A program made the translations under genes and the position numbers. From the sequence record NC_061441.1: a stretch of 64,000 nt of DNA. One strand, written 5' to 3'. Position 1 is the first letter of the stretch. Each line of letters begins with the position of its first letter. Shown piece by piece: positions 5,484-54,693 of the stretch. The notes under the pieces were generated by a model that saw only the letters and a list, made by a program, of their open reading frames with translations, was not told where the DNA came from and searched no databases.

Positions 5484-6305
5484 TTAGTCTCCCACTGCCG
5501 TGTACCAGAAGTCCCAGCCTACAGTATTGGTGCCGCTGGACTTAATGGTAAAGCCACCTAACAAGGCGTTCTCGTTCACTGCACTAGTACCATCAAGGTT
5601 GTAGAGCGTAAACGTCTTAGCCTGGTTCGTTGCAGCATTCAAGAACGTAATCTGAATGCTAAGGCAGCGGTTGATGAACGGGCTGTTGAAGATAACGTGA
5701 ATGGTATCAGTAGTTGATTTGTTCACGATGCGACCCATGTTCTGGGTAAAGCCCGTGTTCATATCTCTGTTACTACCGACCCATGCGTTTGGAATCACAG
5801 CACCTGTTACAGGGTCAAGTGCTTGCGCTGTTCGATACTCGTCGATAGCAGCATCACGCCCCGGGTTACCAGTAGGACCCGTCGCACCAGTAGGACCGAC
5901 TGCTCCAGTGTTACCAGTAGCGCCAACAGGACCAGTGTTGCCCGTAGGACCATTACGTCCTCTTGGACCACGAGGGCCTGGGCAGCCGTCTTCACCGTCA
6001 CGACCGTCACGACCGTCAGCACCAGGCAGACCGCGTAAGCCGTCTTTACCCTGCTTGCCTTCGCGCCCTGACTTGAGCTGGTCGGCAGTAGGCAAACCAA
6101 TAACGTTCGTCTGACTGCCATCAGGCCAAATGAGTGTTAACGTACCTGTTGTCGTATCGAACTGAGCACCCTGAGCACCTGGAATCTTCGCAGCTTCTTG
6201 CGGACTGATAAACGCGACCGCAGTAGAAGTCTTCTTACCTAGCACTTTACCGACGGGGTCATTACCACCGTCGATGAGTGAAGGATTAATGCGTGTTAAA
6301 GACAT
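5484..6305 (-). CDS. Collagen-like fibre protein D (24 Gly-X-Y triplets, C-terminal beta-sandwich tip domain)
   Basis: GREGKQGKD...GNPGRD repeat; N-terminal FDTTTGTLTL..GLPT domain; C-terminal 'VIFNSPF...GFTI...WDFWYTAVG' typical fibre-tip domain. Confidence 0.8.
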   Translation of the reverse strand: MSLTRINPSLIDGGNDPVGKVLGKKTSTAVAFISPQEAAKIPGAQGAQFDTTTGTLTLIWPDGSQTNVIGLPTADQLKSGREGKQGKDGLRGLPGADGRDGRDGEDGCPGPRGPRGRNGPTGNTGPVGATGNTGAVGPTGATGPTGNPGRDAAIDEYRTAQALDPVTGAVIPNAWVGSNRDMNTGFTQNMGRIVNKSTTDTIHVIFNSPFINRCLSIQITFLNAATNQAKTFTLYNLDGTSAVNENALLGGFTIKSSGTNTVGWDFWYTAVGD

Positions 6306-22470: not shown

Positions 22471-22893
22471 TTACTGGGACCTCATGGCAAACGTAACGGA
22501 TTCTTTCGATTCGAGCTTAGGACAGCGCCACGTAACGATACACACGTAGGTCTGTTCGTATTGCTCGCTCATTGTACACGCTGTCTGCACGTTGGTCACA
22601 TCATTCGTAAGACCGTTAGCTGGGTCTTCGAGCGCAAGACGCATGTACGTTGCAATCCAGTCGGCTGTAGTCTGGTCGAAAGGTTCAAATAGGTATTGAT
22701 ACACGTCAGCACCAAACGACTCACGCCATTTGCGAGACTTTTTGCGAGTACCAATGACCATTAAAATCTTCTGGACAATGCTGTCCATGTTCTGCACGTT
22801 ATCACGCGGTTCAAGTTGAATCCACGCATTGATATCACAATAGACTCGCTCGCTGATAGGAACGTCTATTAGTCTGACTCCGATTCCTGCCAT
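22471..22893 (-). CDS. Baseplate wedge/sheath-initiator protein (T4 gp25-like)
   Basis: SIVQKILMVIGTRKKSRKWRESFGADVYQYLFEPFD matches the gp25 pattern (I..T..GER...P.FG..L...LFEP). Confidence 0.85.
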   Translation of the reverse strand: MAGIGVRLIDVPISERVYCDINAWIQLEPRDNVQNMDSIVQKILMVIGTRKKSRKWRESFGADVYQYLFEPFDQTTADWIATYMRLALEDPANGLTNDVTNVQTACTMSEQYEQTYVCIVTWRCPKLESKESVTFAMRSQ

Positions 22894-23183
22894 TAGCCAA
22901 ATCTCACGTTAGAGCTACCGTTAGAAGCTGTGTCGCCACAACTGTTTCCATCACCAGCACGTTGAGCGGGCTTGCCGTTAACACGCACACTTGAGCTTGA
23001 TGTTGCTTTACCAACATGCGGAGGTTTCTTAGGCTTCCAGTGTGGCTTATAGGCGTCACCGCTGCGAACGCTTCCCTTGCCGTTGACAAGCACATTCGTT
23101 GATGCCTGTGCTGGGACGACAGGGAAATAACCGCTGTGACCTGTAGACAGATCTGTGCCAAGTCGAATAGCTTTCTGACCCAT
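22893..23183 (-). CDS. PAAR-repeat spike tip protein (gp5.4-like)
   Basis: RLGTD..GH, STNVLVNGKG..RSGD, VRVNGKPAQRAGD..CG..SNGSSNVRFG; RBS GAGGAG. Confidence 0.9.
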   Translation of the reverse strand: MGQKAIRLGTDLSTGHSGYFPVVPAQASTNVLVNGKGSVRSGDAYKPHWKPKKPPHVGKATSSSSVRVNGKPAQRAGDGNSCGDTASNGSSNVRFG

Positions 23184-23206
23184 GATTATTCTCCTCTGTT
23201 AGACAC

Positions 23207-23214
23207 AAATTAGC
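23207..23214 (-). promoter_or_regulatory. Putative late-promoter motif GCTAATTT
   Basis: Between a terminator and the PAAR start (24 nt upstream). Confidence 0.55.
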
Positions 23215-23228
23215 TTGTTAGGCCGCAG

Positions 23229-23263
23229 AAACAAAAACGGGCAGCCTCATGGCCACCCAGTTT
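23229..23263 (-). terminator. Rho-independent terminator closing the non-coding locus
   Basis: GGGTGGCC-ATGA-GGCTGCCC followed by GTTTTTGTTT on the minus strand. Confidence 0.8.
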
Positions 23264-23292
23264 CTGTGCTTGGATTTGTGTCGCTCATTCCC

Positions 23293-23451
23293 TCACACCC
23301 GAAGCGAGTGCCCGACGGCTTTAGCCGATGAGCCGGAATGAATGTCCGAGAGTGACGATACACCTGGTATCGACAGCATGTGACTCTCGGGCCATGATAG
23401 CAATAGACCAAGCATCGCTATTGCCACCAGCGACACTAAGAACAAAAGCAT
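23293..23451 (-). CDS. Unannotated small membrane peptide, 52 aa (MLLFLVSLVAIAMLGLLLSWPESH...HSLRV)
   Basis: GAGGAG RBS 6 nt upstream of ATG; first 19 residues form one TM helix; below the ORF-track length cutoff. Confidence 0.5.
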   Translation of the reverse strand: MLLFLVSLVAIAMLGLLLSWPESHMLSIPGVSSLSDIHSGSSAKAVGHSLRV

Positions 23452-23510
23452 GTTTCGCTCCTCGTGTCTTACTTTAAATAACTACGTTTGATCAACTGGT
23501 ACTTTGTTCT

Positions 23511-23538
23511 GCTCGTCGCCCAACATCACTTGAGTATC
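23511..23538. repeat. 28-nt direct repeat, copy 1 (GCTCGTCGCCCAACATCACTTGAGTATC)
   Basis: Identical to 23900..23927; flanked by complementary GTTCT/AGAAC. Confidence 0.95.
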
Positions 23539-23899
23539 AGAACGTTTCTCTGTCTTTACCGCCTACGTTGCGGTTATACCGCGCACGACACTCACATATC
23601 AAGGGCACTCGGCGGAAAGGGTAAGTTCCGAATGTCCTAACAACATGAGTGAAGCGAAGGAGGTCCCGTATCGGTGATCTGCAGGGGTTCACGCACTTTT
23701 AACATTCGCTTCTTTGTGCATTAGATCTTTCGTGGACTCGAATGCCCTGCTAATCATTCCACTAAGATATTTCACACCCTATTGTGAACGGGTCAAGCTA
23801 TGGCAGCACGTCAGCACGGCAGGCAGCGGACACACTCCATTAAGCATTGTTAAGGGCAATGCTCAACAGGCTGTGAACAGCTTGGTCGGAATAGGTTTC

Positions 23900-23927
23900 G
23901 CTCGTCGCCCAACATCACTTGAGTATC
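23900..23927. repeat. 28-nt direct repeat, copy 2
   Basis: Identical to 23511..23538; flanked by complementary TAGGT/ACCTA. Confidence 0.95.
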
Positions 23928-24497
23928 TCGACCTAAACTTTTACTCTCCACACGACTACAAGGAAGAATCGCGTTTCTGTGACCTGCGGATGTTTATCAC
24001 TCTCAGACTCTTGAGCCACTATCTGGAAGCTAACACGCTGAGTCGTCCGCTGGATGACGTGTTAGCTCTCCTCTCCTCGTCGTGCGAAGGCCAGAGTGGT
24101 AGCTGATGGATTGTCATGAAGGAATCCCTGGGGGTCATCGCTTCCCAATGCACACAGGGTGAAAGCCTATGCACATCAGGCAGCGTCTGCTGCGGTACTG
24201 CTGTCCCCTTGAGAGTGGCCATAGCGTTGAGTTTGCGCTTCGCCAGTCTACGTGCCTGGAAGGTATCTGCCGTGCCTATGTCTGCATTCAGCATGGTTCC
24301 TTTGCTGGGCCTTTTGGGCGTCAGCGACAGAGCAGATATTCATCACGTGGGTGCCGGGGTTGTCCTCACGATTACAGAGCGAACTCAAACCGGCTGGAGG
24401 CCCATATGCTCAGGAATGCACATACGAGTTTACCAGAAGAACGGCCCCGCTATGGTAGCGTTCTTCCGAGACATACTGATATTACTATCTGCAATTT

Positions 24498-24507
24498 TTA
24501 TTTACAG
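24498..24507 (-). promoter_or_regulatory. Putative promoter element CTGTAAATAA
   Basis: AT-rich inverted-repeat context (ATCTGTAA..TTGCAGAT); identical decamer upstream of the ligase gene. Confidence 0.35.
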
Positions 24508-24514
24508 ATTTTTC

Positions 24515-24577
24515 TTAACCTTCGCCCCAACCACAAGAAGCAGGTTTACCGTCACCGTAACCGATTTTAAACAGCAT
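24515..24577 (-). CDS. Unannotated 20-aa peptide (MLFKIGYGDGKPASCGWGEG)
   Basis: AAGGA RBS overlapping the stop of the upstream gene; codon choice (GGT, AAA, GCT, TCT) like the highly expressed genes. Confidence 0.45.
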   Translation of the reverse strand: MLFKIGYGDGKPASCGWGEG

Positions 24578-24586
24578 AGTTAGTCC

Positions 24587-26347
24587 TTAGAACGCTTTAC
24601 GTTCGATGTTGGAGTAGTACGTGTCATATGGTTCGCTGTACAGCTCTGGGCCGCGCTGCGCACGAATGGTCACGTAACCAGTGTGTCGGTTGAACGCGAT
24701 GATTTCGACTGTAGGCTGTTTCGGCTTGATGGTCGAATAAATCGGAGCGTTCATGGTTGGTTCGTCTGTCTGAATCTTATTTACAGATTGCAGAGCAGCA
24801 CCAGATAGCGTAGGCAGATTGAATCTGATTTCCGCACGTTTCTGGCCGAACGCAATTTTGATTACACCAGCAGGAAGCTCAACGCCGTTCTGTTTCAGAT
24901 ACGCGCCAATGCGACGAGCGATACCAGTCAACTGATCGCGTGTGCGAGGGTCGAATGTACCTTCGAAGCTGATTGCTTCTGCTGGCTGGCGCACGGACAG
25001 ATGCAGACCTGTGTTGAAATAGCCTTCGGTCAGCAGTCGCAGCACTTCCTTCACGACTTCTTTCGTGTTGGATTTGATGGCAGCGATTTTGAGTTCAGGC
25101 ACGTCAACCTTAATCGGGTCACGCAGTTCGGTCTGGTTGTCCATGTAGCCGAGTGATACGTGTTTCGCTTTGGTGTACGTGTGCTGCAACACACCAGTAG
25201 CGCGAATCAATACAGAGCCAGACTTAGACTGATCGTACAGTTCGTCGCTGGTGGTTGTGCTAAACAGGTAGTAGTCTGTAGGCACTGCCATGCGATTAAC
25301 TGCTTCAACTGCTTTCGTCTGTACTTCTTTTACAGTTTTACCGAAGACAACACGACTACGGTTAGGCTGTGCGGCCGAGACAGGGAAGAAGGCGCCGTAT
25401 ACAACCTGCACGTTCTTCTGAATAGGCTTGGAAGAGTTTACCTTGATACCGCCTTGCAACGGAGGTAGCTTCACGCCCACCAGCTTACCGTTAACGATAG
25501 CTTTGTTTGCTACAACAGGCTTGAGGCCAGACAGCAGTTTCTGCAACTCAGCGCCATCAAGAATCTTCTCAAGCGGAACAGCAAGGTTCTGCGGCAGATA
25601 GTGTTTCTTGCGGAACGAGTAGATAACCGTGTCTTTCTTGATCTGCAAAGGCGTAGCCATGTTGCGACCAATCTGACCTACAGGCTGGAACGTGTTCTTC
25701 TTGTCATCCGCAATGGTACCGAATGCTTTCGTGAACTCAGACTGTCCGATGATGTTAGCCACACGCTGGTGACCACGAACGATAAACACGATCTTCGGTT
25801 CATCTTTCAGGCGCAGTTCGTAACGGTCACGGTTCAGATAAACCATGCTGTACTTATCGCCTTTCTCCAGCTCAAGGTCATACTCATCGTTGGCGTCATC
25901 AACCACGACTTTCTTACCTTGATACGTTGCGTACTGACGAGCAGCAGACTCGGAGGCAATCTCCATAGCCTTACCAGTATTCGACAGCGCAACAGCAAAG
26001 TCAGTTACAGCAGGCATCAGGTCAACAGACGATGCAACCGCATAACTGTTACGGCGTTCACCGAGATGCAAATGCACGGCACTTGAAGCAGACATGAATA
26101 CAGTGTTACCTGTGTCTTCATGCTTACCTGCAAAGTTCATGCCGCTAATGCGTTCGATGATGTTGGCGCTTAACGCAGGAAACGCGATATCGCTACCAGC
26201 AGTGAAGTCAAAAATCTCACCGTGACGCCATGCGTATGCCACGTTGTTCGAGCTAAGACCGACAAACGCATCGCCGATCTGCTTAACAGTCATCGGCATG
26301 ATACTCAAGTCACGAATGACCGAGTTTTGCTTTTGAATAAGATTCAT
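24587..26347 (-). CDS. Putative internal head/virion protein (586 aa)
   Basis: N-terminal region with S-x-S motifs, followed by the repeated YxYxG..l..GD.. domain shared with three other ORFs. Confidence 0.6.
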   Translation of the reverse strand: MNLIQKQNSVIRDLSIMPMTVKQIGDAFVGLSSNNVAYAWRHGEIFDFTAGSDIAFPALSANIIERISGMNFAGKHEDTGNTVFMSASSAVHLHLGERRNSYAVASSVDLMPAVTDFAVALSNTGKAMEIASESAARQYATYQGKKVVVDDANDEYDLELEKGDKYSMVYLNRDRYELRLKDEPKIVFIVRGHQRVANIIGQSEFTKAFGTIADDKKNTFQPVGQIGRNMATPLQIKKDTVIYSFRKKHYLPQNLAVPLEKILDGAELQKLLSGLKPVVANKAIVNGKLVGVKLPPLQGGIKVNSSKPIQKNVQVVYGAFFPVSAAQPNRSRVVFGKTVKEVQTKAVEAVNRMAVPTDYYLFSTTTSDELYDQSKSGSVLIRATGVLQHTYTKAKHVSLGYMDNQTELRDPIKVDVPELKIAAIKSNTKEVVKEVLRLLTEGYFNTGLHLSVRQPAEAISFEGTFDPRTRDQLTGIARRIGAYLKQNGVELPAGVIKIAFGQKRAEIRFNLPTLSGAALQSVNKIQTDEPTMNAPIYSTIKPKQPTVEIIAFNRHTGYVTIRAQRGPELYSEPYDTYYSNIERKAF

Positions 26348-34131: not shown

Positions 34132-36792
34132 TCACATATAGCCCATAGTAATCATGTTCAACATCGGGTCGTCCATGAAGATTGGAATCGAATCGAGTGA
34201 ATGACCAGCAGCAGGACTAGAACCACTATTGCCCGAAGCAGCAGGACGAGATACAGCGCCGCCTTTAGGCTGATTAGCAACAGGTGCTGGCGGTGCAGAA
34301 GGAGCTGGAGCAGCAGGTGCTTCCGTTCGAGCGATATCGCCCTCTGTTACGAGAGGCTGACGATCAACAGGAGCTTCTGGCTGAACTACAGGCTCGATGC
34401 GATTGGTATCTCGTGTCATCCCTTTAGGAAGAACATCCGTAGATGGTTTCTTCGTAAATGTCTCGGCCATGACTTCTTTGCGGACCTGTTTATCAAGTTC
34501 CTCAGAGAATGGCTTGCGACTATCAGCGACACCAGATCCACCAGAAGCAGCAACAATGTCTTTAGAAGTCTGACTGGAAGGAGAAGGTGATTGGTCTATA
34601 TTTACAGCTTTCTTCCTGTCAGCTTCGGCCACTTTGAGCAGCACGTCCTTCTCATTCTGCGCTCGCGTTGCCACAGATTGTTGCGTCTGCGCCGAGCTTG
34701 ATTTGAAGTAACGATCAGTCGTTGCTGCCTTGTAGTCCTGAATAGTCTTAATCAACTCTTCATCGGACATGCCGTTAACGTCTTTGCCTTGAAGTGCATT
34801 GGCGATGACGCTTGTACCTGCACCGTACTGTACAGCCGTACTGTACATCAGTTCTTTGACACCAGCACCACGCTTCGTCAAGTCCACACCTACTTCGTTC
34901 TGCATCTTAGCCACGAGCGGTGCGTAATGAGTACGCGTGATATAGTCAGACTGCGCTTTATCGAAGTCGGCACCTTGAGTATTCGCAACATCCTTATAGA
35001 CGGAGTTGAACTGAGCAGTGCCTGGAGCGAGTCCACCGAAACGTTGCAGGAACGGTTTACCTTCAGGGCTGTTCAGGAAGTTCATCATGCTGCCGTTGTT
35101 CGTAGCGAGCTGGTGCTTACCGTACGACACGCCACCAGCATCACCCTGACCAGTAGATACAGTACCTACACCGCGACCACCAGACTCGAACTGTTCTGAC
35201 ACTGAACCGAGACCGCCTTCTGCGATTGCACGATTAGCGATATCGGTTACTTGCTTACTGTCCATACGTCGAGCAGGCTGTGCTCGCATCGGACCAGCAT
35301 ACGTACCAGCACCAGAGCCGGGCATTGCGCCCATACCACCAAAGCCAAAAGGCATAATGACAGGCTGAGGGAATTTCGCTTTGTTCTGATTCTCTGCCGT
35401 AGTGTCGTTGTACTCGTCCATCTTCTCTTTGCGGTCTTTCTCACCGTCAGCGAGCATCTTGTCCGATTCATCAGTAATCTTTTCAGCGACATATTCGCCT
35501 ACAGAACTACCGAAGTAGTCACCCAGTATGTTACCGAGCAGACCGCCCAACGCAGCGCCAGCAGCAGTACCAACAACAGGAACAACTGAACCGAGTGTAC
35601 CGCCTATCCATGCACCAGCAATAGCACCAGTAGTACCGCCAGCAGCACCACCGAAAGCAGAGCCGCCCGCTTTCTTCTTCTCTTTGGCCTTCTCTGCATC
35701 AGTCAGCGTTTCGTCTGCGTCGATGTGTTGCGTTTCGTTCGCATAAGACAGGCCGTTACCTAATGCAGGACCGATGATAGGAATCTTCTTCGACGCACCA
35801 GCCAGCAGTAGACTCGCGCCAGCTACAGCAGCGTCCTGTGTCGCAGATGGGGGCGTTGGCGCATCGCCCTTAGCAGCTTCTTCCGCACGTTGAACTTCTG
35901 GCGCAGTAGGCATAGGTGTGGGTTTTGCATCCGAGTCAGGAGCAGCATCGGTCTTCTGATAATCAGGAGCACCAACACCTCCATTCTCCGCGTTCTGCTC
36001 CTCAAACTTCTCTTGTGATCTGTGCTTCAACCACAAACCACCAGCCACAGCAGCTCCAAGAGTCAACGCTAGACCCAGCTTACCTTTGAGCTTAGGTAAG
36101 CGGCTACGACGAGGTAGATTACGGCCAGGGCCTCTGCGTTCACCGCGATTGCGTCCGTAGCGTCTGCCACGTTTACGACGAGGGCGATTATCTTCTGGAC
36201 CAAAGTCTGGGCCAGCACCATTGTCAGGCCCGTTATCGTCATTAGCAGAATCATCAGGACCGTTGTTACCGCCACCGGCGCCAGGCTGATTGCCGTGTGG
36301 GTCTGACTTAGCGCGGTTCTTCTCTTTGAATGCTTCGCGCTTCTCCCACTCCAACCAATCTTCAAGGGCTTTCTGCGTCTTCGCAGATACTGCGTTGCCC
36401 TCTTTGATCGCGTGAACGATATCTTCACCAGACTTCTCGCCTGCAATAAACAGGTCTTCCAGTGCGGATTCTACTTCACGCGGATTAGGCTGTTGTGGTA
36501 CGGCGCGCGGTGCAGCAGGAGCAGCATCATTGTTCTCCTGCACGTAGCGCACACGCGTGTTGGCCATCTTCTCACGCGCAGCTTTAGCCGCACGGTTCTT
36601 AGCCCTTGAGCCTGGACCAACATAAACGATTTCGTCATCAAGCAGTTCGGGATCGTAATCGTCCTCAATGTCATTGGCAGCACGCCGTCTACGTTTCGGC
36701 TTAGGCATACCAGCGACTGAACCACTAATGCTGTCCGCATGTTCGATCATTAGTTCGAGTGCGGACAGCTCTTTCTCTTTTGGCTTAGCCAT
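34132..36792 (-). CDS. Tail lytic/tape-measure-like protein with VgrG3-C-like peptidoglycan hydrolase domain (886 aa)
   Basis: Gly-zipper hydrophobic helices; LGSVSEQFESGGRGVGTVSTGQGDAGGVSYGKHQLA..G motif; located between chaperones and hub genes. Confidence 0.7.
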   Translation of the reverse strand: MAKPKEKELSALELMIEHADSISGSVAGMPKPKRRRRAANDIEDDYDPELLDDEIVYVGPGSRAKNRAAKAAREKMANTRVRYVQENNDAAPAAPRAVPQQPNPREVESALEDLFIAGEKSGEDIVHAIKEGNAVSAKTQKALEDWLEWEKREAFKEKNRAKSDPHGNQPGAGGGNNGPDDSANDDNGPDNGAGPDFGPEDNRPRRKRGRRYGRNRGERRGPGRNLPRRSRLPKLKGKLGLALTLGAAVAGGLWLKHRSQEKFEEQNAENGGVGAPDYQKTDAAPDSDAKPTPMPTAPEVQRAEEAAKGDAPTPPSATQDAAVAGASLLLAGASKKIPIIGPALGNGLSYANETQHIDADETLTDAEKAKEKKKAGGSAFGGAAGGTTGAIAGAWIGGTLGSVVPVVGTAAGAALGGLLGNILGDYFGSSVGEYVAEKITDESDKMLADGEKDRKEKMDEYNDTTAENQNKAKFPQPVIMPFGFGGMGAMPGSGAGTYAGPMRAQPARRMDSKQVTDIANRAIAEGGLGSVSEQFESGGRGVGTVSTGQGDAGGVSYGKHQLATNNGSMMNFLNSPEGKPFLQRFGGLAPGTAQFNSVYKDVANTQGADFDKAQSDYITRTHYAPLVAKMQNEVGVDLTKRGAGVKELMYSTAVQYGAGTSVIANALQGKDVNGMSDEELIKTIQDYKAATTDRYFKSSSAQTQQSVATRAQNEKDVLLKVAEADRKKAVNIDQSPSPSSQTSKDIVAASGGSGVADSRKPFSEELDKQVRKEVMAETFTKKPSTDVLPKGMTRDTNRIEPVVQPEAPVDRQPLVTEGDIARTEAPAAPAPSAPPAPVANQPKGGAVSRPAASGNSGSSPAAGHSLDSIPIFMDDPMLNMITMGYM

Positions 36793-52707: not shown

Positions 52708-54681
52708 TTACTCCAGTTTGTACTTGCTCTTAAACTCTGCGAGTCCCATAACAGGGATGCCTTTGTCCATCGCTTTCTGGAGTTTCGCAGAACCAGAGCC
52801 AGGGTCTTTTGCGATCAGTATCGTCGTATCGGCTTTCATGCTATCAGAAGCAGTACCACCAAGTTCAACGATACGCTTCATCAGGTCGCGATCACGAATG
52901 CCTGTGAATGCTACGTTAACGCCTTTTAGCTTGGAGCTAACCACTTTCACTTTCTTCGGAGCAACGAGAGTCACGCCCATATTCGCGGCCATCATGTATG
53001 ACTTAACAGCAGCTTCTGCGATGGCAGGACCGAGCTTGTCGATGCCGTGCATACCACTAATCTTGAGAACAAGGTCTGCGGTATATCCACGCTTGAGGTA
53101 ATACTCAAGGTTAGGAATGGCGTCAACAACTTTGTCGAACGTAGTGTTAGCACCGCGCATGAAGAATGACGCTGTAGCTTTCAGCCACGTATTCATCGGC
53201 ACACCAGCTTTCAACGCTTTGAGGTCTTTAGCCAGTTGACGACCGCGAGAGTCGCCTACGATTTCACGCAGCGCACTCATTGAAGCACTAAACAACTGCT
53301 CAGGAGTTTTGATGCCGGACTCAACAAGCATCTTACAAGTACCAGGGCCCGTGTTCGCAACGTCCAGTCCTTTCAAGAACGAGCCAAGCATACGAGCATC
53401 AGCAGCAGACGACTTCGTTTTGACAACGAACTCTACACCACTAATCTTGTACGGCACGTCAGGCAGCTTAGGCTTCTTAGCAGGCTTGAGAATCTCCATG
53501 ATGTATGGGATTACCTTACCGCTTCGAATCAACTTAACCTTAGCACCAGGACCAAGCGGGCGTTTAGGGCCAAGCACTGCACCTTTCTTCTTCGGCTTGA
53601 GATAGCCGTGCTCAACGTAGAAACCGTTGTGCGCAGAAGCACGTTCGACAGTCACTCCACCAGGCATAACAGTAGGTGGGAACAGTGCGACAGGCGCCAG
53701 TACGCCGTACTTGGACTCTTGATAGATAACGTCTTTGACAGTCACGATCACCGTGTCCGCTTCAACGTTCATCTTGAACTTAAAGGCATGTCGTGGGTTG
53801 CTTGCCGTAGCTTTCGGCGTGGCCACATCACGAGTCATCACGATGCCGTCGAGTTCATACTTCGCTTTGGCTATACGCTTGTCTAACCAAGGAATGAGTT
53901 CTTCCTGATTGTCGAAACGTAATGGACCAAAGTGACGCACTACCTCGAATCCCCACTTGTCTAACAGTTTGAACTGTTTCGACTGCGAGAGCGTGGCACC
54001 TTTACCACCGATGATACCGAAGCATACCATGTGGACGTACTTGAACTCTTTAGAAGTTTCAAAGTTACGGATGAGTCCTGACGCAGCGTTACGTGCGGCC
54101 TTAAAGCGACCACCAGCAGATTCGTGCAGCTTCGCCATAAAGGTCTTGTAGGGAATCAGCGCTTCACAGCGTATAACCACCTGACCCTTTTCTGGGATTT
54201 TCTGAGGAATGCGCATGGCCGGAAGGTGCTGAGACACATCCTTACCGTGAGTAGCATCGCCGCGAGTAAGCGCACGAACAGGCACACCCTTCTCGTAAAC
54301 GATTTCAATACTCAAGCCATCGAGCTTATCTGTCAGAATCCAGTCAACGTCTTCGGCCAGTGCCTTAGACAGTTGCTTACCGCCGAGCGTGTACTGATCG
54401 AGACTCGCCATAGGAACAGGCAGCTTAACATCGGAATCATCACGAGCACCGATCTTACGAGCCAGCTTGGACTTAGGCCAGCGCGTGTCGATATAGCGAC
54501 GAATATGGTCATAGACCGCATCCGATATCAAGCCTTCCGAATCAGTGTGGAACGCATCATCAAGATGCGCCACAAGTTTCGTTGTCTGCGTCAGATTGAG
54601 CGTGTCCAGAACCTTATCAGGATTCCTTTCGAGCCGCTTCAATGAGATTTGCATGTTGTTTTCTCCGATCGTCATCAACAC
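52708..54681 (-). CDS. ligA: NAD+-dependent DNA ligase (likely start 54654)
   Basis: ISDAVYD (Ia domain), MASLD, KLDG (adenylation motif I), TRGD..GKDV, ARNAASG, ELDGIV, FKFK, OB fold, C-terminal BRCT (VAFTG, TTILIA, GSAKLQKA). Confidence 0.95.
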   Translation of the reverse strand: MLMTIGENNMQISLKRLERNPDKVLDTLNLTQTTKLVAHLDDAFHTDSEGLISDAVYDHIRRYIDTRWPKSKLARKIGARDDSDVKLPVPMASLDQYTLGGKQLSKALAEDVDWILTDKLDGLSIEIVYEKGVPVRALTRGDATHGKDVSQHLPAMRIPQKIPEKGQVVIRCEALIPYKTFMAKLHESAGGRFKAARNAASGLIRNFETSKEFKYVHMVCFGIIGGKGATLSQSKQFKLLDKWGFEVVRHFGPLRFDNQEELIPWLDKRIAKAKYELDGIVMTRDVATPKATASNPRHAFKFKMNVEADTVIVTVKDVIYQESKYGVLAPVALFPPTVMPGGVTVERASAHNGFYVEHGYLKPKKKGAVLGPKRPLGPGAKVKLIRSGKVIPYIMEILKPAKKPKLPDVPYKISGVEFVVKTKSSAADARMLGSFLKGLDVANTGPGTCKMLVESGIKTPEQLFSASMSALREIVGDSRGRQLAKDLKALKAGVPMNTWLKATASFFMRGANTTFDKVVDAIPNLEYYLKRGYTADLVLKISGMHGIDKLGPAIAEAAVKSYMMAANMGVTLVAPKKVKVVSSKLKGVNVAFTGIRDRDLMKRIVELGGTASDSMKADTTILIAKDPGSGSAKLQKAMDKGIPVMGLAEFKSKYKLE

Positions 54682-54683
54682 TG

Positions 54684-54693
54684 TTATTTACAG
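54684..54693 (-). promoter_or_regulatory. Putative promoter element CTGTAAATAA
   Basis: 30 nt upstream of the probable ligase ATG; identical to 24498..24507. Confidence 0.35.

Follow-up and report, generated by a model that had tools for sequence, protein, structure and literature searches.

In Erwinia phage pEa_SNUABM_16 (MZ443782, genus Alexandravirus), which is the source of the 64-kb window analysed here (100% identity), one intergenic interval of 1,403 nt stands out from an otherwise compact chain of genes, and comparative evidence indicates that its minus strand encodes a conserved structured RNA with a body of about 1.0 kb. The interval occupies window positions 23184-24586 (positions 85184-86586 of MZ443782), lacks long open reading frames (ORFs) and lies between the genes for a KMPT-N-domain protein and a PAAR spike-tip protein. 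All genes of the window are on the minus strand, and the other gaps in this chain of ORFs measure at most about 225 nt, as an earlier note made from the letters of the window had claimed in calling it the only large gap. Minus-strand positions 23227-24510 would make up one transcription unit (predicted ends), in which the RNA body is followed by the messenger RNA (mRNA) of a membrane mini-protein. The earlier note had proposed a new large structured non-coding RNA on the coding strand; this view holds for the ~1.0-kb body and fails for the 3' fifth, where the note missed the mini-protein mRNA that forms the last ~250 nt of the unit.

The comparison of related phages carries the case for an RNA. 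By blastn, the interval is present in 34 phage records at 72-100% identity over at least 95% of its length, whereas Sasquatchvirus Y3 and the unclassified SNUABM_34/7/13 group show patchy matches. Throughout these phages, every Alexandravirus included, it lies between the same two genes and measures ~1.27-1.33 kb, and several metagenomic relatives keep it in the same place at about this length. Its columns are about as conserved as those of the flanking genes, but it has many small insertions and deletions (indels). RNAalifold folds the minus strand of an alignment of 16 phages (A2) at -248.1 kcal/mol with a covariation term of -34.4, and 124 of the 258 consensus pairs keep pairing through changes on both sides. 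The reverse complement of the same alignment, i.e., the plus strand, reaches only -146.5 kcal/mol (covariation term 13.7), a strand asymmetry that fits an RNA. Column shuffles that preserve the gap pattern and conservation (n = 40) fold at -78.3 ± 7.0 kcal/mol, corresponding to z = -24, and yield 16 ± 4 compensatory pairs (at most 25), whereas the real alignment has 128. With four metagenomic lineages added, which were recovered via the neighbouring KMPT-N protein, the energy is -225.1 kcal/mol compared with -69.4 ± 6.2 for shuffles (z = -25) and -128.3 for the opposite strand, and 133 of 250 pairs are compensatory. Pairing across the alignment is far more than chance, and the covariation that the earlier note proposed to look for across syntenic intervals is strong on the minus strand. 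For the domain that combines a repeated module with a hairpin (123 nt), a covariance model (CM R1) was aligned to 24 matches, including those from distant genera. In this alignment, which was fitted to the model and hence favours structure, 94.3% of cells are paired, compared with 71.1% after shuffling and 34-52% with partners slid; double changes affect 25 of the 32 pairs, and none of 500 shuffles reaches the observed covariation.

An interval of this kind could also hold decayed protein genes or a DNA element, such as a replication origin, packaging site or regulatory region. It lies at the border of two gene modules, and GenBank annotates two short, overlapping hypothetical coding sequences (CDSs) in the gap, pEaSNUABM16_00118 and 00119 (24019-24294, minus; 24116-24583, plus). 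However, neither CDS is conserved in relatives, whose depositors annotated different short ORFs in the interval or none, and both are probably spurious calls, as are the short CDSs in the RNA body of SNUABM_35, SNUABM_17 and SNUABM_32. Each of 17 genomes has 8-38 stops in every reading frame of both strands, and with indels of any length the body (23501-24477) retains no conserved frame. A protein-coding or pseudogene reading of the body was rejected on these stops and on the differing annotations. Compensatory, G-U-tolerant and strand-asymmetric pairing is unexpected for DNA elements or pseudogenes; a DNA element or replication origin was rejected on the strand-asymmetric covariation together with GC content and skew, which show no anomaly over the interval. 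An origin other than RNA is therefore extremely improbable. Asked, as the earlier note suggested, whether homologous intervals conserve ORFs or pairings, the syntenic intervals of related jumbo phages answer with pairings.

Architecture of the RNA body

The structured non-coding body (~980 nt, 23501-24477) was delimited by RNAalifold, shuffles and the distribution of stops, and it consists of two homologous units plus accessory hairpins; all features described below are on the minus strand unless stated otherwise. The 5' domain (23825-24451) was compiled from the helix table and comprises a CCUGAUG...CAUUGGG hairpin and unit 1. This domain is possibly closed by helix 24451-24447/23829-23825, which has moderate support and a compensatory version in ENA42. 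The CCUGAUG...CAUUGGG hairpin (24180-24144) has a stem of 12 pairs, 5 of them compensatory (24179-24168/24156-24145), and other covarying hairpins are found in the 5' region. Unit 1 opens with a hairpin at 24027-24068. Its apical loop GCGGA (24050-24046) would form a pseudoknot with UCCGC (23990-23986) in a downstream box, a pairing that is canonical in 17 of 17 sequences and covaries at two positions. Local pairings given by RNAalifold near 24058-24042 and 24000-23986 clash with this better-supported loop-box pairing and were discarded. Box 1 itself (AGUGAUAAACAUCCGCAG, 23984-24001) is kept in all genera, including Yoloswag, SNUABM_5 and phages of JA13 type. It is followed by module 1 (23895-23927), the first copy of a repeat, in which a CUC/GAG stem closes the conserved loop AAGUGAUGUUGGGCGAC; helices 2 and 3 of CM R1, which lie in the region of module 1, covary (CG to UA, GC to UA). 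The loop is 17 nt long, nearly invariant and the same in both units. A hairpin with the conserved apical loop GCCCUUAAC comes next (23831-23875; 16 pairs, 9 compensatory). In the CM R1 alignment this hairpin is 95% paired with double changes in 13 of 17 pairs, and its loop recurs in JA13, L050, L051 and SNUABM_5.

Unit 2 repeats this plan. Its hairpin (23732-23762) has a covarying stem, and the apical loop GCAGG (23750-23746) would pair with CCUGC (23685-23681) of box 2 (AGUGCGUGAACCCCUGCAG, 23679-23697), which was located with the unit 1 profile and with relatives. The resulting 5-bp helix exists in four compensatory versions: GCAGG/CCUGC, GCGGU/ACCGC, GCGGG/CCCGC and GCUGG/CCAGC. The two units share one layout: the loop of a hairpin pairs with a CCGCAG box further downstream, after which comes an arm that bears the module. 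The large branched arm of unit 2 (23558-23675) is defined by helix 23675-23667/23567-23558, and module 2 (23506-23538) is the second copy of the repeat, with a closing stem that covaries from CUC/GAG to CCC/GGG. The two copies are 33 nt long and 94% identical, and their last 28 nt match exactly, in keeping with the exact internal 28-nt repeat seen in the earlier note. Module 2 is recovered by the profile of unit 1 (E = 7e-8), which also matches box 2 weakly, so that this repeat can be understood as a vestige of the duplication of a pseudoknotted unit within the RNA; CM R1 also detects module 2 (E = 2e-5). Searches for further copies of the module loop in the window, and for similarity to E. 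coli sequences as a target or antisense partner, found none. Between the body and the mini-gene lies a poorly conserved linker with no predicted pairs (23471-23505).

One metagenomic scaffold from ENA, L044 (5767-6826), has an RNA that is ~220 nt shorter and lacks exactly unit 1. The missing part extends from behind the CCUGAUG hairpin to a GCUG..CAGC hairpin, and a run of N occurs elsewhere in this RNA. The scaffold could represent a natural one-unit variant or an assembly artefact.

Six helices had been picked by eye in the earlier note, and their fates differ. Four are in the consensus with strong covariation: 24068-24059/24036-24027, the stem of the unit 1 hairpin, in which 10 of 10 pairs are compensatory; 23875-23858/23848-23831; 24348-24332/24270-24250; and 23390-23384/23352-23346. 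A fifth, GTGTCGCT/AGCGACAC (23436-23429/23285-23278), covaries at two positions and competes with a rival local pairing that also covaries. The sixth, GAAGCGAA/TTCGCTTC, is not supported, as four lineages disrupt it with no compensating change.

The mini-gene and the ends of the unit

The 3' part of the unit contains a mini-ORF of 52 codons plus stop (23293-23451), recognised as a frame that stays open in relatives and whose product has a predicted N-terminal transmembrane helix (MLLFLVSLVAIAMLGLLLS). A Shine-Dalgarno sequence, GAGGAG, lies upstream (23458-23463). The mini-ORF is open in 18 of 18 Alexandra-type sequences (47-52 amino acids), with the transmembrane helix kept even in Y3 and S34. 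It is also present in Yoloswag (gp109), SNUABM_5 and loci of JA13 type, and the mini-protein is conserved in six genera. Over its first 19 codons, the variable columns are distributed 13/4/11 among the three codon positions, as expected for a hydrophobic coding segment, and indel events measure +3, -15 and -3 nt, with a single +1 near the end in the S34 lineage. Given this conserved small ORF, the interval is not wholly non-coding, and the CDSs deposited at its position in SNUABM_35, SNUABM_2 and SNUABM_17 are real genes. The mini-protein has no match in Pfam, PHROG or NCBIfam, and a family search returned only two unnamed clusters.

The mRNA of the mini-gene is structured in its own right. 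Together with the terminator it is very stable in single-sequence folding (z = -5.7 compared with shuffles), and the predicted fold hides the Shine-Dalgarno sequence in a hairpin. Two mutually exclusive pairings covary at the start of the mini-ORF, GACAC/GUGUC and GUGUCGCU/AGCGACAC. At its 3' end, a covarying three-way junction (23287-23339) overlaps the last codons and the stop codon; its helices 23339-23335/23291-23287, 23333-23324/23319-23310 and 23308-23304/23296-23292 all have compensatory changes, and the junction is kept in Yoloswag, SNUABM_5 and L039. For this 3' part, the mini-ORF might encode a type I toxin-antitoxin-like peptide, or a lysis or exclusion peptide of the membrane, whose translation is held in check by mRNA structure. 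The length of the peptide, its transmembrane helix and its presence in six genera agree with this idea, as do the stability of the mRNA, the predicted burial of the Shine-Dalgarno sequence, the alternative covarying pairings between 5' and 3' parts and a weak sigma-70-like antisense promoter. Conversely, the peptide matches neither Hok/Gef nor any Pfam, PHROG or NCBIfam family, and phages commonly carry small membrane proteins for a variety of reasons, leaving the idea a tentative one that is rather doubtful on present evidence. The antisense site, on the plus strand at 23370-23398 (TCGACA, 17-nt spacer, CATGAT; 9/12 matches), is the sole sigma-70-like match of the region and runs through the mini-ORF in the antisense direction. 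A genuine promoter at this site could produce an antisense RNA, although the number of sigma-70-like matches does not exceed the chance expectation.

The 5' end of the predicted unit coincides with a conserved AT-rich block of 33 nt (24478-24510), identified in the alignment and composed of AATCTGTAAATA (24510-24499) followed by AAAATTGCAGATAGTAATATC. Across 18 genomes from at least three genera, the block hardly varies. The KMPT-N gene is immediately followed by AATCTGTAAATA in Yoloswag, SNUABM_5, L039, JA13 and L047-L050, and by a version with one mismatch in Yersinia phage fHe-Yen9-02. Wherever the mini-ORF is a separate gene, a second copy of the motif lies directly upstream of it. Because PaBG-like phages encode their own sigma-70-type factors (PMC7412058), AATCTGTAAATA may be read as a phage-specific promoter. 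The AT-rich promoter-like element of the earlier note has grown into a block conserved across genera, whereas its promoter role is still a matter of interpretation. The minus strand of the window has four copies of CTGTAAATA and the plus strand none; the sequence is possibly a rare class of phage promoter that resembles the T4 late -10 element. The further minus-strand copies are at 24777-24788, which falls within the last part of the KMPT-N gene at a distance of 270 nt upstream of the RNA, at 34599-34607, and at 54685-54693, immediately upstream of a gene that starts at 54681.

At its other end, the unit stops at an intrinsic terminator (23227-23264; GC-rich stem, tetraloop and U tract) that was found by scanning and by conservation. 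Its stem (23259-23238) and T run are kept in all relatives, Salmondvirus JA13 included, which bears out the terminator placed at 23229-23263 in the earlier note. The 43 nt between terminator and PAAR start codon (23184-23226, minus; AACAAGCUAAUUUGUGUCUAACAGAGGAG) are almost invariant across genera and probably serve the baseplate operon as its promoter or leader; an extra ORF of ~40 amino acids is inserted in this region in AD1, 2910A, SNUABM_3, Yoloswag and L047/L050. On the opposite side of the unit, the SNUABM_16/18/22/28 lineage has a 76-nt insert between the KMPT-N stop codon and the promoter-like motif (24511-24586, minus), which holds a 20-codon ORF (24577-24515; MLFKIGYGDGKPASCGWGEG). 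In L040, a metagenomic relative, this place is taken by a shorter ORF (MYIGYGEG; 5771-5808), and the insert is absent from all other relatives.

Distribution and mode of action

A non-coding stretch of 0.6-1.34 kb directly follows the KMPT-N gene in every locus read at 42% protein identity or more. The stretch measures ~0.6-0.7 kb in Yoloswagvirus, Rivsvirus (SNUABM_5, L039) and L047/L048, where it ends in a CCUGGUG hairpin and was found to contain one box and the module core twice. The JA13 type (Salmondvirus) is variable: L050 has 1.27 kb with three boxes, L051 has 1.1 kb and JA13 has ~0.7 kb. Across relatives there are two or three boxes and modules. CM R1 finds full-length matches at the ends of the stretches of L047 (E = 2e-5), JA13 (2e-4), L051 (3e-4), L050 (4e-3) and SNUABM_5 (0.02), and its matches are weak for Yoloswag, L039 and L048. 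Outside this clade little was found: a DNA-pattern scan of IMG/VR recovered the same clade only, plus 4 uncultivated virus genomes (UViGs) and one chance match in a coding region (L029), and a scan of JGI metagenomes by synteny of the neighbouring proteins gave only 3 loci, all of the same clade. The most distant KMPT-N homolog, on the Logan contig L046 (6882-7300; 31% identity), has no non-coding stretch; it is followed at once by a 99-amino-acid ORF and by oppositely oriented genes (Rrf2-like, dCMP deaminase). The absence of a gap in L046 bounds the distribution of the RNA.

The gene that follows the RNA changes between genera. It is the mini-ORF in Alexandra-type phages, an ORF of 136-171 amino acids in Yoloswag, SNUABM_5, L047 and L048, and other small ORFs in JA13, L050 and L051. 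In distant genera the order is RNA stretch, small protein genes, motif, mini-ORF, three-way junction and terminator. Because the mini-gene sits apart with its own motif elsewhere, the RNA and the mini-gene can be regarded as two conserved, separable modules, which from the arrangement of their sequences appear to be fused in one unit in Alexandravirus, Sasquatchvirus and the S34 lineage. These arrangements bear on whether the RNA is a giant cis-acting leader, in which a 5' untranslated region of 1 kb controls the translation or stability of the mini-protein mRNA or of the next gene. In favour of a leader, Alexandravirus, Y3 and the S34 group have neither a terminator nor a second motif between RNA and mini-ORF, and the start of the mini-ORF combines exclusive covarying pairings with a predicted hairpin that sequesters the Shine-Dalgarno sequence. 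Yet unrelated small genes follow the RNA in Yoloswag, SNUABM_5, JA13, L047, L048, L050 and L051, and the mini-ORF of these genomes lies behind a motif of its own, 0.6-1.5 kb further on; even so, both elements are conserved. The switch-like pairings, moreover, are inside the mini-gene module and not the large RNA, and the linker 23471-23505 is unconserved. The constant orthologous downstream gene that marks cis-regulatory leaders and riboswitches is replaced here by a neighbour that differs between genera. Since the RNA keeps its place while that neighbour changes, a leader function is unlikely.

The same observation favours an RNA that acts in trans, as does the repeated loop, which is nearly constant in both copies across genera. 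On balance, the large RNA is probably a trans-acting scaffold, an estimate that counts an oligomer made of RNA alone separately. In the proposed sequence of events, the promoter-like motif AATCTGTAAATA would start the unit, the ~1.0-kb RNA and then the mini-protein mRNA would be transcribed, and the intrinsic terminator would end transcription before the baseplate operon. The RNA would serve as a stand-alone structural or scaffold RNA in the general class of GOLLD, ROOL and OLE. Its two or three units would offer the same recognition loop to multiple copies of a single partner, be it a protein of the phage or the host or a further molecule of the RNA itself. That the membrane mini-protein is co-transcribed with it in this lineage would reflect a secondary fusion of the two separable modules.

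Two other readings were considered. In one, the stretch is a cluster of small RNAs, one per unit; this would suit the modular architecture and the variable number of units, and JA13, L049 and L051 have extra motif-like copies inside the non-coding stretch. Given a single motif and a single terminator for the RNA in the window, however, and helices that join distant segments (24400-24397/24073-24070, 23675-23667/23567-23558 and the possible closure of 24451 with 23825), such a cluster is distinctly improbable. In the other, the RNA forms a homo-oligomer by itself, either a symmetric cage or a dimer, and the repeated modules are contacts between subunits instead of protein sites. ROOL, GOLLD and OLE assemble with copies of themselves, GOLLD and ROOL being homo-oligomers by cryogenic electron microscopy, and the size, ornate multi-domain fold and phage origin of the present RNA, without an identifiable protein partner, match this oligomeric class (PMC12286853). 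The internal pseudo-symmetry of two homologous units is also compatible with a symmetric assembly. Nevertheless, the RNA has no sequence or structure homology to the GOLLD, ROOL and OLE families, and no conserved self-complementary loop with covariation was found in it, so that an RNA-only oligomer is about as unlikely as a leader.

Several points weigh against a trans-acting structured RNA as set out above. The earlier note had suggested comparing folding energies with shuffles and had counted an energy no better than theirs among the outcomes that would refute its proposal, and here the body falls short: in single-sequence folding it is no better than dinucleotide shuffles (z = -1.1 for 24451-23825 and -0.6 for 23760-23500). 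This shortfall is outweighed by the comparative evidence and is not decisive, because covariation is present; nor are functional RNAs defined by folding more stably than shuffles. The RNAalifold consensus leaves out pseudoknots and contains errors (it was corrected by hand in part), and the long-range domain closures rest on few events. The family is confined to one jumbo-phage clade, and therefore many covariation events are shared by descent. The promoter and 5' end are predicted from motif conservation only, and a sigma-70 promoter scan of the region gave nothing on the minus strand. The KMPT-N protein has no recognisable RNA-binding fold or structural match. Lastly, no terminator separates RNA and mini-ORF in the window, which leaves room for a cis role in this phage.

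Upstream of the interval lies the gene for the KMPT-N-domain protein (586 amino acids, 24587-26347, minus), which directly precedes the RNA in every genus that carries it and has 36 cluster-level homologs (P0001-P0036). For this protein, Pfam gives the KMPT-N domain only, the PHROG match is of unknown function, NCBIfam gives none and the PDB has no sequence match; its AlphaFold2 model is confident (predicted local distance difference test score 80) and has YajQ as the best Foldseek match, which is not significant (E = 0.025). Genes for a thymidylate kinase, an MmcB-like protein and a NUDIX protein are further upstream, and downstream the interval is bounded by the PAAR spike-tip gene (22893-23183, minus), the first of the baseplate operon. 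A bolder and quite speculative proposal is that the RNA represents the first known case of a whole new class of giant phage RNAs (0.65-1.3 kb), which are built from tandem pseudoknotted units and form a defined higher-order particle during jumbo-phage infection. Just as speculatively, this particle might be an RNA-only multimer or, by analogy with OLE and OapA, a ribonucleoprotein tethered to the membrane by the 52-amino-acid peptide. With similarly low confidence, it might perform a step of infection at the switch from nucleotide metabolism to virion assembly that no phage protein performs.

Comparison with known RNAs

To our knowledge, only a handful of bacterial and phage non-coding RNAs exceed 500 nt. 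They comprise the ribosomal RNAs, RNase P, transfer-messenger RNA (tmRNA), group I and II introns, OLE, GOLLD, ROOL, HEARO and raiA. As far as we know, all of these have proved to be ribozymes, ribonucleoprotein machines or RNA assemblies without precedent. The Erwinia phage RNA is larger than GOLLD and has no detectable kin in curated families, and its duplicated or triplicated pseudoknotted units are unusual. It is found in dozens of isolated and sequenced lytic phages of Erwinia amylovora and Dickeya solani. These hosts are easily grown, and therefore expression, structure and partners are open to direct study, unlike those of most ornate RNAs that come from metagenomes only. For annotation, at least six jumbo-phage genera carry an unannotated RNA gene and an unannotated conserved gene for a membrane mini-protein, and several 'hypothetical protein' CDSs deposited in the interval are probably spurious.

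Searches against known families agree with the earlier note, which had recognised no GOLLD, ROOL, tmRNA, RNase P, transfer RNA (tRNA) or intron. A cmscan of 22800-25000 against Rfam 15 with E up to 10 gave only a chance C/D-box small nucleolar RNA (15.7 bits against a gathering score of 36), and five related loci gave no Rfam match with E up to 1. ARAGORN detected no tRNA or tmRNA gene in the whole 64-kb window. GOLLD, ROOL, OLE, HEARO, raiA, RNase P, group I and II introns, riboswitches and ribozymes were considered as candidates and set aside, as their covariance models do not recognise the RNA. A search of the available papers found none on this RNA and no transcriptome of these phages. A large survey of candidate structured RNAs in IMG/VR does not mention these phages in its text, and one of its candidates may partly overlap with the present RNA (PMC10690425).

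Among small systems, hok/sok resembles the 3' module only: both have a small hydrophobic peptide, a compact mRNA, long-range pairing of 5' and 3' parts and a buried ribosome-binding site, the last predicted here. In contrast to hok/sok, the mini-gene has no Hok/Gef match and lies in the structural region of a lytic phage, and the parallel leaves the 1 kb of RNA upstream unexplained. The sponge RNAs CsrB and RsmZ likewise repeat one conserved loop on a structured RNA. Their loop, however, is a short GGA hairpin, whereas the Erwinia phage RNA has two or three copies only, each in a pseudoknotted unit of ~250-400 nt.

OLE provides a closer parallel, as a large structured RNA gene followed by a small membrane-protein gene in the same transcription unit. 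OLE RNA and OapA form a membrane-localised ribonucleoprotein in Firmicutes (PMC12265935; PMC7936274). The phage RNA differs in that it has no match to the OLE model, and its single-pass peptide of 52 amino acids is not a relative of OapA. The linkage of RNA and membrane gene, furthermore, is not universal here, the two being separated by other genes in Yoloswag- and JA13-type phages.

GOLLD and ROOL share the most with the present RNA, since all are phage-encoded, multi-domain non-coding RNAs of more than 0.5 kb that are supported by covariation, have an unknown function and have no known obligatory protein partner. The Erwinia RNA is longer (body of ~1.0 kb, predicted transcript of 1.28 kb) and does not lie beside tRNA genes. 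It belongs to lytic jumbo phages of Enterobacterales, whereas GOLLD and ROOL come from Lactobacillales and from rumen or lake sources. It also differs in being built of tandem homologous pseudoknotted units, as judged here from sequence alone. By this comparison, the RNA appears to represent a new family among the giant structured RNAs whose function is unknown, and a function unlike theirs, if demonstrated, could place it in a category of its own.

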